A DNA stretch of 64,000 bases from the sequence record MZ422438.1; one strand, written 5' to 3'. Below the pieces are notes generated by a model that was not told the origin of the DNA, ran no database searches, and saw only the letters and a program-made list of their open reading frames with translations. The number at the start of each line of letters is the position of its first letter. Within the stretch, counting starts at the first letter, position 1. Made by a program: the position numbers and the translations under genes. This document shows, piece after piece, positions 58,667 through 64,000 of the stretch.

Positions 58667-59412
58667 TTAACGTTTATTAATAGATGTTCTACGAGATTTA
58701 GATTTTTTATTACGATCAAAGATACTTTGTTTCTTAGGTTTATCGATATTTTTATTTTTAGGTTTTCCTTTACTTCTAATATCTTTTATCTTCTTGTTAT
58801 GAAGTCTTCTATTCTTATAACGCTCAATTTCAACAAGCTTTCTTTCTGAAGCGGGTATATTTCTAGATACTTGTATTTTGTCAATAGGTTTTAATCTTTC
58901 TAATGAGGGAAATGTTAATAGATTATTCTTTTCTAGATATATAAGGGCAAAATAAACACTTTTTTCAAATCCATAAATTTGGTTTGGGTTTCTTACTTTA
59001 GGTTCATCTACTAAAGATTTAATACTCATTTTATTCTTAAGCCAATCAATAATCAAACCATCTCGATTATAAATATATCCATACGTAAACATAAAGTTAG
59101 GATTATTACTATAGAAACTGATATGCGAGTTTAGAATAGAAACGTTTGTATTATTTTTGTCTATTTTAATTACTACGTCATAAACCATTTTTTCTNNNNT
59201 ANACGTNNCANANNNNNTTNTANANNNATANTNCNAACTTTATNTTTACNTNTNNANATANTTNTANNCNANATGGTTTNANTNTTGATTNGCTTNNNNA
59301 TANAATGAGTATTAAATCGGTCATACATATTGGCGATAATCATATCCCGCCTAGCTAATCCTGCAGAACCTTTTCCTGAAGGGTTTTGCATAAACTGTTT
59401 TACAGTGATCAT
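58667..59412 (-). CDS. Conserved hypothetical protein broken by a low-quality N-run
   Basis: ORFs 59173..59412 and 58667..59188 flank Ns at 59196-59303; late-like motif at 59448-59459. Confidence 0.6.
59196..59303. other. Low-quality sequence (ambiguous bases)
   Basis: Many n characters. Confidence 1.
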
Positions 59413-59540: not shown

Positions 59541-61289
59541 TTATAAGCTAATTCGAATATATTGATTACTTGTAACCAGTAATCCAATTACTGAAAATGA
59601 TGCTCTCATAATCTGAATATCCGTCATTACCGAGTTGATAATCTTTGTTTCAGAGTCAGGAACATATTTCTTTTCTTTAAGATCATAAATCATTTTATTG
59701 TTAATACAACTCTCAACAGTTTCATATACTTCTTCATCGCTAAATAATTGAGAGTTCTTTAATACAATTGCATATGTTTCTTTAAATGCAGAATATACTA
59801 GTTGTAACAATACTTTATCTACTTCAGTTAAACTTTCTTCATTATCAATAATATCTTTAATTACTTTTGGAATTGAAATATTTCCTCCCGGAATATAACC
59901 GTAATCTAAAGCAGATCTACATGCAAAGATAGAATCTTCCAAGAGATATTTACGAGTATCACGTTCCAATTCAGATTTACCACCAATAAATAACGTAGCT
60001 ACTTTAGAAAGTAATCTAGCTTTACGATTCTCTAATTTAAAGATTTCAGAATCTACACCTTTTTGATATACGTCTAAATTCTTTAAATCTTGAATATTAA
60101 GGTCAATTAATTCAATTCGAGCATCTAATTCTTCTTGATGATACTCTCCCTTAATAAATTGAGTTGATCCACCAGTCATCGTTACTGTTTCACAACGACC
60201 AATATGTTCACCATAAAATTGAGCGTTATTTGTTTTACTTAAGATAAATAAGTCTTCAAAACCTTCTTTACCTTTTTTAGTATTAATCTGAGTTCCTAAG
60301 TATATTGCTAAGTCTTCGAATTCTTCTTTACGAGTTCTAGCGGGAAAGTCTGTAGCTGCAATTTCTAGGGATACTCTGGTATTATTGATCTTTTGAATCT
60401 TCATAAAGTCAATAAATTCCGTTCTATATTCCTTCGCAACAATAACTAGACTTTTACCATTACCGCATACCTGACCAATAAGATGGGCAAAGAAATCAAT
60501 ATCCGTCTTATCTAAACATGAATCAGTAATAAATACATAAGGTTCTTTGAACATTGCTTCAATCTTATTTGGTTTATTTGCAAAGATAGGGTCAACATAC
60601 CCACGACTAGTTTCAATACCATTTACAATTTCAAATGTATCCTCTTCAGAAGTAGATTTATCTAAATAAATAAATCCTCGTTTACCAATTTGTTTATAGA
60701 TATTATAAATAATATTTCCGTCTTTTTCATCATTGTTGTTAGATACGGTTGCAATATTACGGAGAATCTCAAAGTTATCTTCATTAATAGGAATTGATTT
60801 TTCTTTTAATTTCTTTTCAATCAGTTCACCAACATTATTTAATGAATTAATGATTTCTTTCTTAGGAAGCTTACCTAAGAATTGTGAACGATCATTAACC
60901 ATTGGTTCTAATTGATTATATAATTCATTACTAACCACTACTGAAGAAGTTGATCCATCACCAACCTCTTGCACTAATGATCTTGAAATAGTCTTAATAT
61001 TATTCAGAAAAGTAGTACTAATAGTATTGTTAAAACGAATCTTGTCTAAAATTGTGAATCCATCTTTAGAGATCTTAGAACCATATAAATTATCTTCTAG
61101 AATAGTTGTAGATCCATAATATCCTAAGGATTTAGAAAGAATATCACTAATACTATTAAGTGTTTCTTTAGCAATTTTTTGATATACTTCATCAGAAATT
61201 ACATTGCTTTCTACAATATCAATTTTTTCCTTAGGTTCAAGAATTCTTGAAATTTGATCTTTAATAATATTGCTCATACACTTTTCCAC
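59541..61289 (-). CDS. groEL: GroEL-like phage chaperonin
   Basis: SKDGFTIL, VGDGSTSSVV, IATVSNN, GIETSRGY, LFIGG, GYIPGG. Confidence 0.92.
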   Translation of the reverse strand: MEKCMSNIIKDQISRILEPKEKIDIVESNVISDEVYQKIAKETLNSISDILSKSLGYYGSTTILEDNLYGSKISKDGFTILDKIRFNNTISTTFLNNIKTISRSLVQEVGDGSTSSVVVSNELYNQLEPMVNDRSQFLGKLPKKEIINSLNNVGELIEKKLKEKSIPINEDNFEILRNIATVSNNNDEKDGNIIYNIYKQIGKRGFIYLDKSTSEEDTFEIVNGIETSRGYVDPIFANKPNKIEAMFKEPYVFITDSCLDKTDIDFFAHLIGQVCGNGKSLVIVAKEYRTEFIDFMKIQKINNTRVSLEIAATDFPARTRKEEFEDLAIYLGTQINTKKGKEGFEDLFILSKTNNAQFYGEHIGRCETVTMTGGSTQFIKGEYHQEELDARIELIDLNIQDLKNLDVYQKGVDSEIFKLENRKARLLSKVATLFIGGKSELERDTRKYLLEDSIFACRSALDYGYIPGGNISIPKVIKDIIDNEESLTEVDKVLLQLVYSAFKETYAIVLKNSQLFSDEEVYETVESCINNKMIYDLKEKKYVPDSETKIINSVMTDIQIMRASFSVIGLLVTSNQYIRISL

Positions 61290-61413
61290 GCTGCTATATA
61301 AATTAGTGAATTTAATTTAATTCACAAGAATTTAATCAACTTCGTCAACAAGTTTCTTATAAATTCACAAAAAGTGAAAATACAGAGGAAAACTCTCTTA
61401 AGTTATAATGGGT

Positions 61414-62514
61414 TTAGCCAACCCTTTCTGCATATATTTTTAAATTACATGCAGAATTATAATCTCTATCCATCACTTCATTACATTGATCACATGTATA
61501 TAATCTATCCGAAAGTTTCATTTTTTTATCATTTTCTTTTTTATATCAACAACAACTACAAATTTGAGTTGATGGAAACCATCTATCTGCAATAATTAAG
61601 GTATTTCCATATAAAATACTTTTATATTGTAATTGAACTTTAAAACGATAAAATAAAGACCGTGATATAGATTTAGATATTTTTCGGTTAGATAACATTC
61701 CTTTAACATTTAAATCTTCTATACATATAGTGTGATAATTTTTAATAACGTAAGAAGTAAACTTATGCAGCCAATCATCTTGTATATTTTGTATTTTCAA
61801 ATAAATATTTTGAAGTTTGATTTTCACTTTATTATATTTATTCGAATTATTGACTTTTCTAGACAAGATTTTTTGGTATAAAGAAATTTTCTTATATAAT
61901 GGAATTAAATTTTTTAAAGGACTATTAAATCGGTGATTTTCTTCACTTATATCAAAATGACCAATATTTGCATCAATTCCAACTGTCGGAAGATTTTGAT
62001 TTGAATGATACATACTATCATCAGTATCAATACAGAAAGAAGCAAAATACTGATTTGCTCTTTTTGTAATTGTACATATTTTAATATCACCATTAAATCG
62101 TATCGATTCAGACATTTTTACACCATATTTAAATTTAGGTAAAAATAATCGATTATTAATAATCCTTATTGTACTTTCGGCTTTTCGATTAATCGTAAAT
62201 GAACTTTTTGCTTTTCGTTTATTTTTGAATTTAGGTTTACCTGAATTAGATGTAAAAAATCTCTTCCAACCATATGCCATATTTTTACAAGTATTATCAA
62301 AAATATTTGGGGGAAAATTATCCCATTCAGGTTTCAATTTCCTTTTATATTCGTCTCGCACTTTTCGTTCATTAGGTTTATTGCCGTTAATGTACATTTC
62401 ATTCCATATATTCAAAGACACATTATATGAATATCTTGAATAATTGAAAAAATCTTTAAATTGTAACTGCATTGTTTTGTTAGGATAGATTCTGATTTTT
62501 TGACTTATTATCAT
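61414..62514 (-). pseudogene. tnpB: TnpB RNA-guided nuclease with a premature TGA (61546-61548) in the zinc finger
   Basis: HTH KIRIYPN, RuvC-I VGIDAN, RuvC-II IEDLNVKGM. The frame continues CSCC*YKK...YTCDQC...DRDYNSACN to TAA at 61414. Confidence 0.85.
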
Positions 62515-63109
62515 CTAAATCATCCCTTAAAGTTTTTTTATATTTTCGTAATCCGTATAATCGGCTAGAAAATACATGAATAATTGTCATAAGATCATCA
62601 ACTAGTTCTTTTTCAGGAGAAGAACTTTCTAAATTAATTACAGTTAGTGTTGTTCCATTAACTTTACATCTTTCTTCAATAAGTTCAAAACCAAAACGAG
62701 TTAGTCGATCTTTATATGTTATAATAAGTTCTGATACTTCTTTGTTTTCTATCATGTCAATTAATTTTAAAAAATTCTTTCGTTTAAAATTAATTCCGGA
62801 TGCAATATCTGAAAGATAAATATTAACAGGTTTTCCACTATTAACTGAAAATGTTTCAATAGATTGTCGTTGGTTTTCAAGTTCTTTCTTTTGGTTACTA
62901 GTTGAAACTCGATAATATGCTACAATTTTTCTTTTTTCTTCAGGTTTGATATTATTAGTTAGTTCAAAATAATCATCAACCATTTCGTCAGTATAATACT
63001 TTAGGCGTCCTTTTCGAATAGGTTTAATTATTTTTTCCTTTTCTAATGTTTCTAGTTTTTTCTTTGATATACGTAATTTCATTCTAAATTCATCAGAACG
63101 CATAACCAT
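62480..63109 (-). CDS. tnpA: IS607 TnpA serine recombinase/transposase
   Basis: N-terminal HTH, YYRVST catalytic Ser, DRLTRFG, ELVDDLMTIIHVFSSRLYG. Confidence 0.95.
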   Translation of the reverse strand: MVMRSDEFRMKLRISKKKLETLEKEKIIKPIRKGRLKYYTDEMVDDYFELTNNIKPEEKRKIVAYYRVSTSNQKKELENQRQSIETFSVNSGKPVNIYLSDIASGINFKRKNFLKLIDMIENKEVSELIITYKDRLTRFGFELIEERCKVNGTTLTVINLESSSPEKELVDDLMTIIHVFSSRLYGLRKYKKTLRDDLDDNKSKNQNLS

Positions 63110-63199
63110 TTAAAACACACTCCTTTTTAATTTATATTATATTGTTACATTAAAATATAAATTAAAGTGAAAAAGAGTGAAACTAGATGATATTCATAA

Positions 63200-63722
63200 T
63201 AAGTCGGCTAAATTAAATTCTTATTATAATTCCCAATTTTGTGTTTCCACATTGGTTAAATAGCAGGACTATATCATAACCTATAATATTATAGGTCCCT
63301 CGTACTTCCCTTTCGGTACTCTACTTGCTTCGTATAGATATCTCAATCTATCTTATTCACCATATAGGTGTTACATTTATTATTTGCTTTCGATAGTCTC
63401 TGAACGTTCACCCATCAAGTGGGAGCTTCGCTGCTAGATTTTCCATTAGTCCACCCTTAGCACTACGTTTTCTAAGGTTCACATTATTACTTCACTTAGA
63501 CACTGATAGGTTTTATTTCAGCTTAGGTAATCTTAAAGAGTTTTTTCTGTCTTTCGACTGCATTCACGCTTACCGTTACCAGTTACGTTGTAGCCCTTTA
63601 AGCTTTAGGAGTTTACAAGCAATTCACAAGGTTTCGCATACATCTTTACAGATATATGGGAGTTTTGAATACAGGTTAATTTAATTTATATTTTAAACTA
63701 AACTCATTTAAAATCAATTAAA
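63200..63722 (-). ncRNA. Group I intron ribozyme core
   Basis: P AATTGCTTGTAAACTCC (63608-63624), Q AATCTAGCAG (63431-63440), R GTTCAGAGACTA (63394-63405), S ATGATATAGTCC (63266-63277); P7 pairs GACTA/TAGTC. Confidence 0.9.
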
Positions 63723-63749
63723 CCATTACTGCTTCTTTTCTCCACTTTT

Positions 63750-64000
63750 TTATTTTATTATAATTGAAAGTACATTGTCATTTTCAATAATACAATCGAA
63801 TTCTTCGATAAAGGTATACATCTTAATATAATCTTTACATGAATCAAGATCAATATAATTATTAAATTTTAAGGATACTTTTTTAAATTGTCTAATTTCT
63901 TCATCTTTGGAAGTATTGTTAAATCCTTTGATGATATTAAATGAAAATTTCTCTTCAAGATCATATAGTAGTAAATTAAGCTTTAATCCGAATTCAGAAT
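63750..64000 (-). CDS. Hypothetical protein, 3' end (partial)
   Basis: Open frame SEFGLKLNLL...NVLSIIIK* ending in TAA at 63750-63752. Confidence 0.6.
   Translation of the reverse strand, partial: SEFGLKLNLLLYDLEEKFSFNIIKGFNNTSKDEEIRQFKKVSLKFNNYIDLDSCKDYIKMYTFIEEFDCIIENDNVLSIIIK

Follow-up and report, generated by a model that had tools for sequence, protein, structure and literature searches.

The DNA analysed here (the window) is a stretch of 64,000 nucleotides that matches positions 159581-223580 of MZ422438.1, the last 64 kb of the Listeria jumbo phage LPJP1, with 100% identity and on the same strand. The LPJP1 record is 223,580 bp long and the host is Listeria grayi. Towards the end of the window a group I ribozyme, tnpA, tnpB and a conserved right end follow one another on the minus strand and lead into a chaperonin (Cpn60/GroEL-like) open reading frame (ORF). 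The initial annotation of this stretch had described an IS607-type IStron at the chaperonin gene of a jumbo phage; the element is of this type and lies immediately upstream of that gene. With a probability of roughly 0.8, we assign the element to the AG/CAG-ended sort of group B (IS607-type) IStrons and place it at 63739-61291.

All features of the locus lie on the minus strand. The upstream gene closes with the stop codon TAA at 63751-63753, and the insertion site is intergenic, 11 nt downstream of it. Between this stop and tnpA are ~630 nt without a long ORF, in which the G+C content rises to 0.40 (~0.25 around). They contain the left flank GTGGAG (63740-63745), in which the final GGAG is Shine-Dalgarno-like and supplies the 5' strand of P1, the left end (63663-63739), made up of an internal loop in P1 (AAAA/AAAA) and a P1-extension hairpin that is long and A+U-rich, the internal guide sequence CUCC as the 3' strand of P1 (63659-63662), the P2 hairpin (63637-63658; 9 bp, GUAA loop) and the group I catalytic core (63233-63631). 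The genes tnpA (62480-63109; 209 aa) and tnpB (61414-62514, with one in-frame TGA at 61548-61546) overlap by 35 nt. The right end (61291-61413) likely comprises an omega-RNA scaffold and the 3' end of the intron, with the terminal G at 61291 as the predicted omega-G, and the right flank or 3' exon is the chaperonin gene (59541-61290; Pfam Cpn60_TCP1, E = 3.7e-26). Within its best-supported boundaries the whole IStron measures 2449 bp. It is present as one copy only in the LPJP1 genome and carries a direct repeat, TAAATTAAATT(A/C)AC, in its left end (63688-63675) and its right end (61319-61306).

The classical group I boxes were located at 63622-63616 (P, the 5' strand of P4), 63437-63431 (Q, the 3' strand of P4), 63405-63393 (R, with the P7 5' strand GACTAT) and 63276-63267 (S, with the P7 3' strand ATAGTC). 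A full core upstream of tnpA-tnpB had been claimed from these four boxes, and the core is indeed complete, with covarying helices. All of P1 to P9 were found, including P3 (63631-63625/63304-63298), P7 (63398-63393/63272-63267), P8 (63297-63290/63285-63278) and P9 (63255-63233), together with P4, an extended P5 with GNRA loops, P6, P7.1 and P7.2. Helices were placed by anchors in six introns, among them the LPJP1 IStron, an IStron of the Staphylococcus jumbo phage LY01 (OR836606.1), plain LPJP1 introns and an intron of Brochothrix phage A9. In the resulting table P2, P3, P6 and P8 covary, and P4 (TTGCT.../...AGCAG) and P7 (GACTAT/ATAGTC) are conserved. P3 reads CCTTGTG/TACGAGG in LPJP1, CCTCGTG/TGCGAGG in LY01, ACCTTTG/TGGAGGT in A9, and AATTCTATT/AATAGAATT and AAAATTTCTTT/AAAGAAATTTT in two of the plain introns of LPJP1. 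When LPJP1 is compared with LY01 only, nine pairs differ on both sides. The P7.1 and P7.2 hairpins, which lie between P7 and the 3' strand of P3, show compensatory changes in LY01 and in the IStrons of two metagenome contigs (L172 and L181). P2 and P3 do likewise in both contigs, and compensatory versions of P2 also occur in LY01 and the plain introns. The traits of subgroup IA that were found are P7.1/P7.2 after the P7 5' strand and a G (61291) as the last intron base.

By sequence, the LPJP1 core is 75-85% identical to the IStron cores of L172 and L181. Using blastn, it was also 71-80% identical over 90-142 nt to stretches within split genes of Firmicute phages, the matches spanning split nrd and recA genes of Enterococcus, Brochothrix and Staphylococcus phages. 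These were the recombinase gene (recA) of phage 812, whose annotation shows two gene pieces and an endonuclease encoded in the intron, and the ribonucleotide reductase (nrd) genes of Brochothrix phage A9 and Enterococcus phage phiEF17H. Three more group I-type cores related to the IStron ribozyme were observed in LPJP1 itself (L005 825-1314 and 18904-19287; L006 9050-9449, minus strand), at ~100.8, 118.9 and 159.1-159.4 kb of the record. They are unannotated, were missed by Rfam, and occupy gaps between adjacent same-strand ORFs, one in a polymerase-like gene (99715-102220) and one just before rpoB.

The 5' ends of the LPJP1 and LY01 elements were folded alone (first 111 nt and 145 nt, respectively; 200 shuffles). 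Both minimum-energy structures have the same architecture, built from different sequences: the flank GGAG paired with CUCC (63662-63659), a 4x4 A loop, the long A+U-rich hairpin and P2. The z-scores were -3.8 and -6.0, and 0 of 200 shuffles were as stable. In the LY01 copy that lies in the large terminase gene (terL), the flank AGAG is matched by the guide CUCU, a compensatory change in P1. The last exon base is thereby a G paired to C in P1, and the general group I rule (a U, in a U-G pair) is not followed. This is a known peculiarity of group B IStrons, in which an internal loop likewise comes after P1 (Tourasse et al. 2014, PMC4227781).

The tnpA gene is intact and encodes the catalytic-serine motif YYRVSTSNQ. 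Its product matched the NCBIfam model NF033518 ('IS607 family transposase') with 178.4 bits (cut-off 110) over profile positions 3-186 of 187, with an additional Pfam Resolvase match, and its closest relatives are 66-74% identical and mostly reside on metagenome contigs of 160-490 kb. The tnpB product matched guided_TnpB with 194.6 bits (cut-off 100) as well as Pfam OrfB_IS605 and Cas12f1-like_TNB. Its TGA aligns to an invariant Gly of the CxxCG zinc-finger motif in eight relatives, and the 43 codons past it are in frame and retain the second CxxC and the RuvC-III DRD motif. Given that this frame is conserved and that the window as a whole uses the standard genetic code, the TGA would be a nonsense change of recent origin, or else an artefact that arose because amplified DNA was sequenced. 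Reassignment of the stop codon was considered and rejected, as the standard code already covers the window with ORFs. As written, the tnpB product ends before the last zinc-finger cysteines and the third RuvC catalytic residue, and through this truncation the LPJP1 copy has probably lost its RNA-guided homing function.

Phage LY01 holds three tnpB copies (L002 ~2878-4786, L179 ~1900-3829 and L180 2501-3820), two with the ribozyme and one without a core; the two other paralogues are each 86% identical to the copy in the DNA polymerase gene (polB). Both ribozyme-bearing IStrons of LY01 lack tnpA. One divides the gene for the large terminase and the other that for the DNA polymerase catalytic subunit, and the resulting pieces are annotated as "hypothetical proteins". 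Because these copies interrupt two essential genes of an isolated phage, the ribozyme family must splice in vivo in LY01. A very small group I-like core (AATTGCTGG ... GTTCAACGACTA ... GATATAGTC) was also observed in this phage, beside a gyrase B-like gene (L180 ~1640-1780).

Among metagenome contigs, L172 and L181 carry the ribozyme and tnpB, and L173-L178 carry tnpB without a core. In the latter set the left part, ~120 nt upstream of tnpB, begins GTGGAAACAC...AATCAAG, which corresponds to the P9 loop and 3' strand with the rest of the core absent; these tnpB-only elements may be IStron derivatives that have lost the ribozyme. Four further contigs of ~200-250 kb from the European Nucleotide Archive (L182-L185) hold an intron-less tnpA-tnpB element whose DNA is 68% identical to LPJP1 over 1.9 kb (TnpA 73-74% identical; TnpB of L182 56%). 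Its insertion separates the ATG of a large gene, whose called length varies from 642 to 1441 aa between contigs, from the Shine-Dalgarno sequence AAAGGAG; a 7-bp identity, AGAAGTC, flanks the element, and eight sibling contigs (L186-L193) have the site empty. Global alignment of this plain IS607 left end with that of LPJP1 gave scattered blocks only, too scattered to claim that the ribozyme core was inserted into an IS607 left end. Viral contigs scanned for exact patterns of the right-end and core motifs gave 0 matches, and none of 160 loci fetched via distant TnpB relatives (27-47% identical; viral and genome collections) had matching ribozyme boxes beside tnpB.

The end positions of the related elements were read from their alignments, empty sites and exon fusions. 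When the right ends of eight elements were aligned, they shared conserved blocks and the terminus ...TATATAGCAG, and seven of the eight stopped at ...CAG, followed by unrelated DNA. Five of these seven (LPJP1, the three LY01 copies and L182) read ...TAGCAG, while L181 reads ...AATAGCAG and L172 reads ...TATGACAG; the right end of L173 is ambiguous, with two CAG positions. The LPJP1 right end is 87% identical to that of L181 over 125 nt and 85-88% identical to those of the LY01 copies over the last 57-60 nt, and by this alignment it terminates at 61291, five bases before the terminus of 61286 that had been assigned initially.

On the left side, the polB copy of LY01 is placed between the polymerase motifs KILANSYYG and DTDS, where the empty site of phages Madawaska and PALS_2 reads ...TATAGTGG[TG]TTGATATTG... 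and LY01 reads ...TATAGTGG[AG]-element-...TAGC[AG]TTGATATTG.... At the terL copy, ...TCTAGAG joins ATCTAATG..., and the joint encodes ...KKSRDLML..., identical to the Madawaska terminase. In L172 the joint GGAG|...CAG| fuses both flanking ORFs in frame, and the empty site of the L182 siblings reads AAAGG[AGAAGTC]ATGG in eight contigs. Precise removal restores the host sequence in each case (LY01 polB, LY01 terL, L172 and L182). The left junction consequently follows (T/A)(G/A)GAG, as given by three empty sites and one in-frame exon fusion, with the flanks GTGGAG (LY01 polB), CTAGAG (LY01 terL), ATGGAG (L172) and AAGGAG (L182). At both LY01 sites the IStron-free relatives (L007, L008 and L194) were observed to differ synonymously exactly at the junction (GGT vs GGA; CGT G vs AGA G), the empty alleles reading GTG where the occupied alleles read GAG. 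This difference could represent a donor core dinucleotide installed on insertion, or alleles escaping RNA-guided cleavage.

From these relatives we infer the exact ends of the LPJP1 copy. Its sequence AAAAAGTGGAG then AAAAGAAGCAG... aligns gap-free to GTGGAG then AAAAGAAACTA... of the LY01 polB copy; because of this alignment and the shared CAG right ends, the element most likely spans 63739-61291, with the left junction at 63740|63739 and AG at both junctions. The likely crossover dinucleotide, judged from the flanks of the related elements, is the AG at 63741-63740. The classical GG crossover dinucleotide of IS607 is absent from both junctions so placed, which have AG instead, as in LY01 and L182.

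With these ends, a mechanism can be proposed by analogy with CboIStron of Clostridium botulinum. The serine transposase TnpA would catalyse both excision and insertion of the complete unit through crossover at AG, between the flank ...GTGG[AG] and the right end ...TAGC[AG], and would move it via a circular intermediate whose junction is predicted to read ...TATATAGC[AG]AAAAGAAGCAG..., that is, ...TAGC[AG]AAAAGAAG.... The transcript would fold into the group I ribozyme, with P1 formed by the flank GGAG and CUCC (63662-63659), and would be spliced at the transposon ends, with the 3' splice site after G 61291. Splicing would join ...AAAAAGUGGAG to CGUGGAAAAGUGUAUG... and give the predicted RNA joint GUGGAG|CGUGGAAAAG; the 5' leader of the chaperonin mRNA would lose 2449 nt, and GGAG would again stand 13 nt from the annotated AUG. 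The right end may additionally encode the scaffold of a TnpB guide RNA, the guide itself being the first bases of the right flank (the chaperonin leader).

The insertion point lies directly after GGAG, 1 nt before a GTG at 61289 and 13 nt before the ATG at 61277. Both are candidate chaperonin starts: the GTG is in frame with the ORF, as the initial annotation had stated, and the ATG is the start of groL in GenBank. Chaperonin homologues have variable N-termini with conservation from ~25 residues in, so no upstream exon is needed; a comparison of this kind does not fix the start codon, and the statistics of GGAG-to-start spacings in the LPJP1 genome are too noisy to choose between GTG and ATG. 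The insertion had been thought to lie within the chaperonin start codon, whereas the site deduced here is intergenic. The chaperonin coding sequence is uninterrupted, and what splicing restores is the leader and ribosome-binding region, not the protein. As GGAG and the start codon are parted by the insertion, splicing could gate the expression of the chaperonin. The intron-less relative persists between a Shine-Dalgarno sequence and an ATG in many contigs, which argues that insertions at such sites can be tolerated.

A stronger version of the gating idea is that the jumbo-phage IS607/IStron lineage targets Shine-Dalgarno-like (T/A)GGAG, so that insertions can land between a ribosome-binding site and a start codon, and that in LPJP1 splicing is needed to return GGAG before the chaperonin start, making translation dependent on intron activity. 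We consider this unlikely. If true, chaperonin translation could also depend on binding of the 3' end by TnpB, by analogy with CboIStron. Somewhat better placed, and a real possibility despite falling short of an even chance, is that the element is an IStron by descent that has become a silent or decaying passenger, with the chaperonin translated from its own ATG, spliced or not, and mobility being lost. The premature TGA in tnpB, the single genomic copy, the weak ORF-enclosing stem, the untouched coding sequence with its preceding 13 nt identical with or without the element, and the plain IS607 relative that persists between the Shine-Dalgarno sequence and ATG of another gene with no intron at all are consistent with such a passenger. 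Against it, tnpA has kept its full length and scores clearly above the threshold for its family, every ribozyme helix is preserved, and the tnpB frame is still conserved after the TGA, so that the lesion either arose recently or is an artefact of the amplified DNA that was sequenced.

Some of the same observations also weigh against reading the locus as a fully functional IStron at 63739-61291. The TGA in tnpB speaks against full function in LPJP1. An A+U-rich stem enclosing the ORFs would place the 3' end next to the core; it is strong in LY01 (-28.7 kcal/mol vs -11.3 +/- 2.8 shuffled) and does not stand out from its shuffles in LPJP1 (-15.5 kcal/mol vs -13.2 +/- 3.3 shuffled, with 58 of 300 shuffles as good). 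A convincing P10 pairing was not seen for LPJP1 and is plausible for one LY01 copy, and the GGAG-ATG spacing of 13 nt is at the long end of spacings in the LPJP1 genome. No LPJP1 empty site was found, the search of viral contigs for the chaperonin being empty and the closest homologue only 50% identical, and TGG at 63744-63742 and 61288-61286 would also permit a GG-core junction. Finally, Rfam models returned no group I match in the window, either at the gathering threshold or at E <= 10. Given that Rfam is equally silent on the other LPJP1 group I-like introns and on the LY01 IStron, yet detects group II introns and tRNAs, this silence is a blind spot of the library and not evidence against the intron.

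Two other sets of boundaries were weighed, both built on TGG. The initial annotation had taken TGG at both junctions as the mark of a GG core, and the trinucleotide is present where claimed (63725-63723 and 61288-61286); as a junction mark it is weak and recurs at 63744-63742. In that version the IStron runs from 63722 to 61286 and is seated within the start codon of the chaperonin (ATG|G), with ATG GAA AAG TGT ATG regenerated by splicing. The joint is in frame, GGAG lies 13 nt upstream of that ATG, and for most group B IStrons in the literature the target ends in GG and the element begins with U (PMC4227781). However, positions 63739-63723 align gap-free with homologous sequence at the start of the LY01 element, which is proven there to lie inside the element, and they form the base of the conserved P1-extension hairpin; the ATG itself (63727-63725) is within the hairpin stem (ATG G, 63727-63723). 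In unspliced RNA this ATG opens only ATG GTT TAA. On the right, homology ends at ...CAG in seven related elements (five ...TAGCAG) and not five bases later. We regard these boundaries as highly improbable. The annotation had itself named a comparison with empty alleles of relatives as a check, and this comparison points essentially to the outcome it had listed as contrary, a junction elsewhere, at 63740|63739. Scarcely better is a version with the left junction after AAAAAGTGG (63742) and the right end at 61286, giving the empty site AAAAAGTGG|AAAAGTG within or next to the GTG start codon. It has TGG, and even GTGGA...AAAAG, at both places and fits the classical IS607 GG core, but it needs a right end five bases longer than those of the related elements, and the right junctions of LY01 lack GG even though the ends are near-identical to that of LPJP1. 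It is accordingly also improbable, and 63739-61291 is retained.

The GenBank record of LPJP1 names tnpB "IS607 family transposase" and tnpA "hypothetical protein", and leaves the intron unannotated; introns, transposases and chaperonin are nowhere mentioned in the LPJP1 paper (PMC8460666), which gives evidence of modified bases in the phage DNA, possibly uracil. Upstream of the IStron is an unannotated gene that the linear record splits between its two ends (window 63741-64000 joined to L003 1-1600). Its ORF continues as a single open frame across both joined ends and finishes ...SIIIK before the stop, which makes the record a permuted circle. No coding sequence is annotated in the first 1574 bp. 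Scans for sigma-70 promoters and terminators were uninformative at 26% G+C, and LPJP1 encodes its own RNA polymerase genes. Elsewhere in the window, 42 scattered N mask the sequence at 59196-59270, inside a small ORF (59173-59412), and a group II intron was detected on the minus strand at 4274-4359 and 4688-4832 (Rfam Intron_gpII, 64.7 bits; group-II-D1D4-5, 38.2 bits). Two further LPJP1 group II introns lie at L005 20247-20890 (plus strand) and 37009-39484 (minus strand); four group II introns have already been reported in LPJP1 (PMC12350094).

The location of IStrons in phages is not new, and the mechanism has already been described. The initial annotation knew of few or no phage examples, but two Clostridium botulinum phages are listed as carriers of group B elements (CbISt3 and CbISt4) in the IStron survey of Tourasse et al. 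2014 (PMC4227781). A reconstitution of the IS607-IStron mechanism followed in 2023 (bioRxiv 10.1101/2023.11.20.567912). In the one literature collection searched, which is not proof of novelty, no paper linked IStrons or TnpB to LPJP1, LY01 or their jumbo-phage group. What is new is the host, a large Listeria phage whose DNA is apparently modified, together with the AG/GAG-type ends and the family context in LY01 genes and 140-250 kb contigs. IStrons thereby extend beyond Clostridial and Bacillus chromosomes and two Clostridial phages to large Listeria and Staphylococcus phages and to 140-250 kb contigs that resemble uncultured phage genomes, in a related set with an AG core and a GGAG-type flank. 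The LPJP1 copy is the only one found here with ribozyme, tnpA and tnpB together, and it resides in a cultivable, already engineered phage, offering a possible handle on the interplay of transposition, RNA-guided homing and splicing in lytic infection. The element also bears on annotation, given the LPJP1 tnpA and tnpB labels, the missing intron and the split LY01 genes recorded as hypothetical proteins.

Among known systems, CboIStron has the same order of ribozyme, serine TnpA, TnpB and right-end scaffold, and the same pattern of transposon ends that serve as splice sites after a last exon base G, which for LPJP1 is deduced from its relatives. CboIStron differs in its target and target-adjacent motif (TAM) TGGG, GG core and scaffold end UCGG, where LPJP1 has the flank GAG, the core AG, the end GCAG and a tnpB with a stop codon. 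CsISt1 of Clostridium sporogenes, compared by description, is like the LPJP1 element and its relatives an IS607-class element that inserts after AG and ends in CAG (PMC4227781), with an intron of subgroup IA2; unlike LPJP1, it is chromosomal and has ORF B only, whereas the LPJP1 element has an intact tnpA, a jumbo-phage location and the flank (T/A)(G/A)GAG. CbISt3 and CbISt4, known here from the literature only, are likewise phage-borne IS607-type IStrons, but their phages infect Clostridia, whereas LPJP1 is a 224 kb phage of Listeria grayi with apparently modified, possibly uracil-containing DNA. Ordinary group I introns of Firmicute phages (812 recA, Brochothrix A9, Enterococcus nrd; Twort-type IA2) have the core and P3-P8 in common with LPJP1, but carry a homing endonuclease gene or no ORF and are without the long P1 extension, tnpA, tnpB and conserved right end. 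The intron-less elements of L182-L185, in turn, share the right terminus ...TATATAGCAG and the left flank GGAG with LPJP1 and differ from it in having no ribozyme core.

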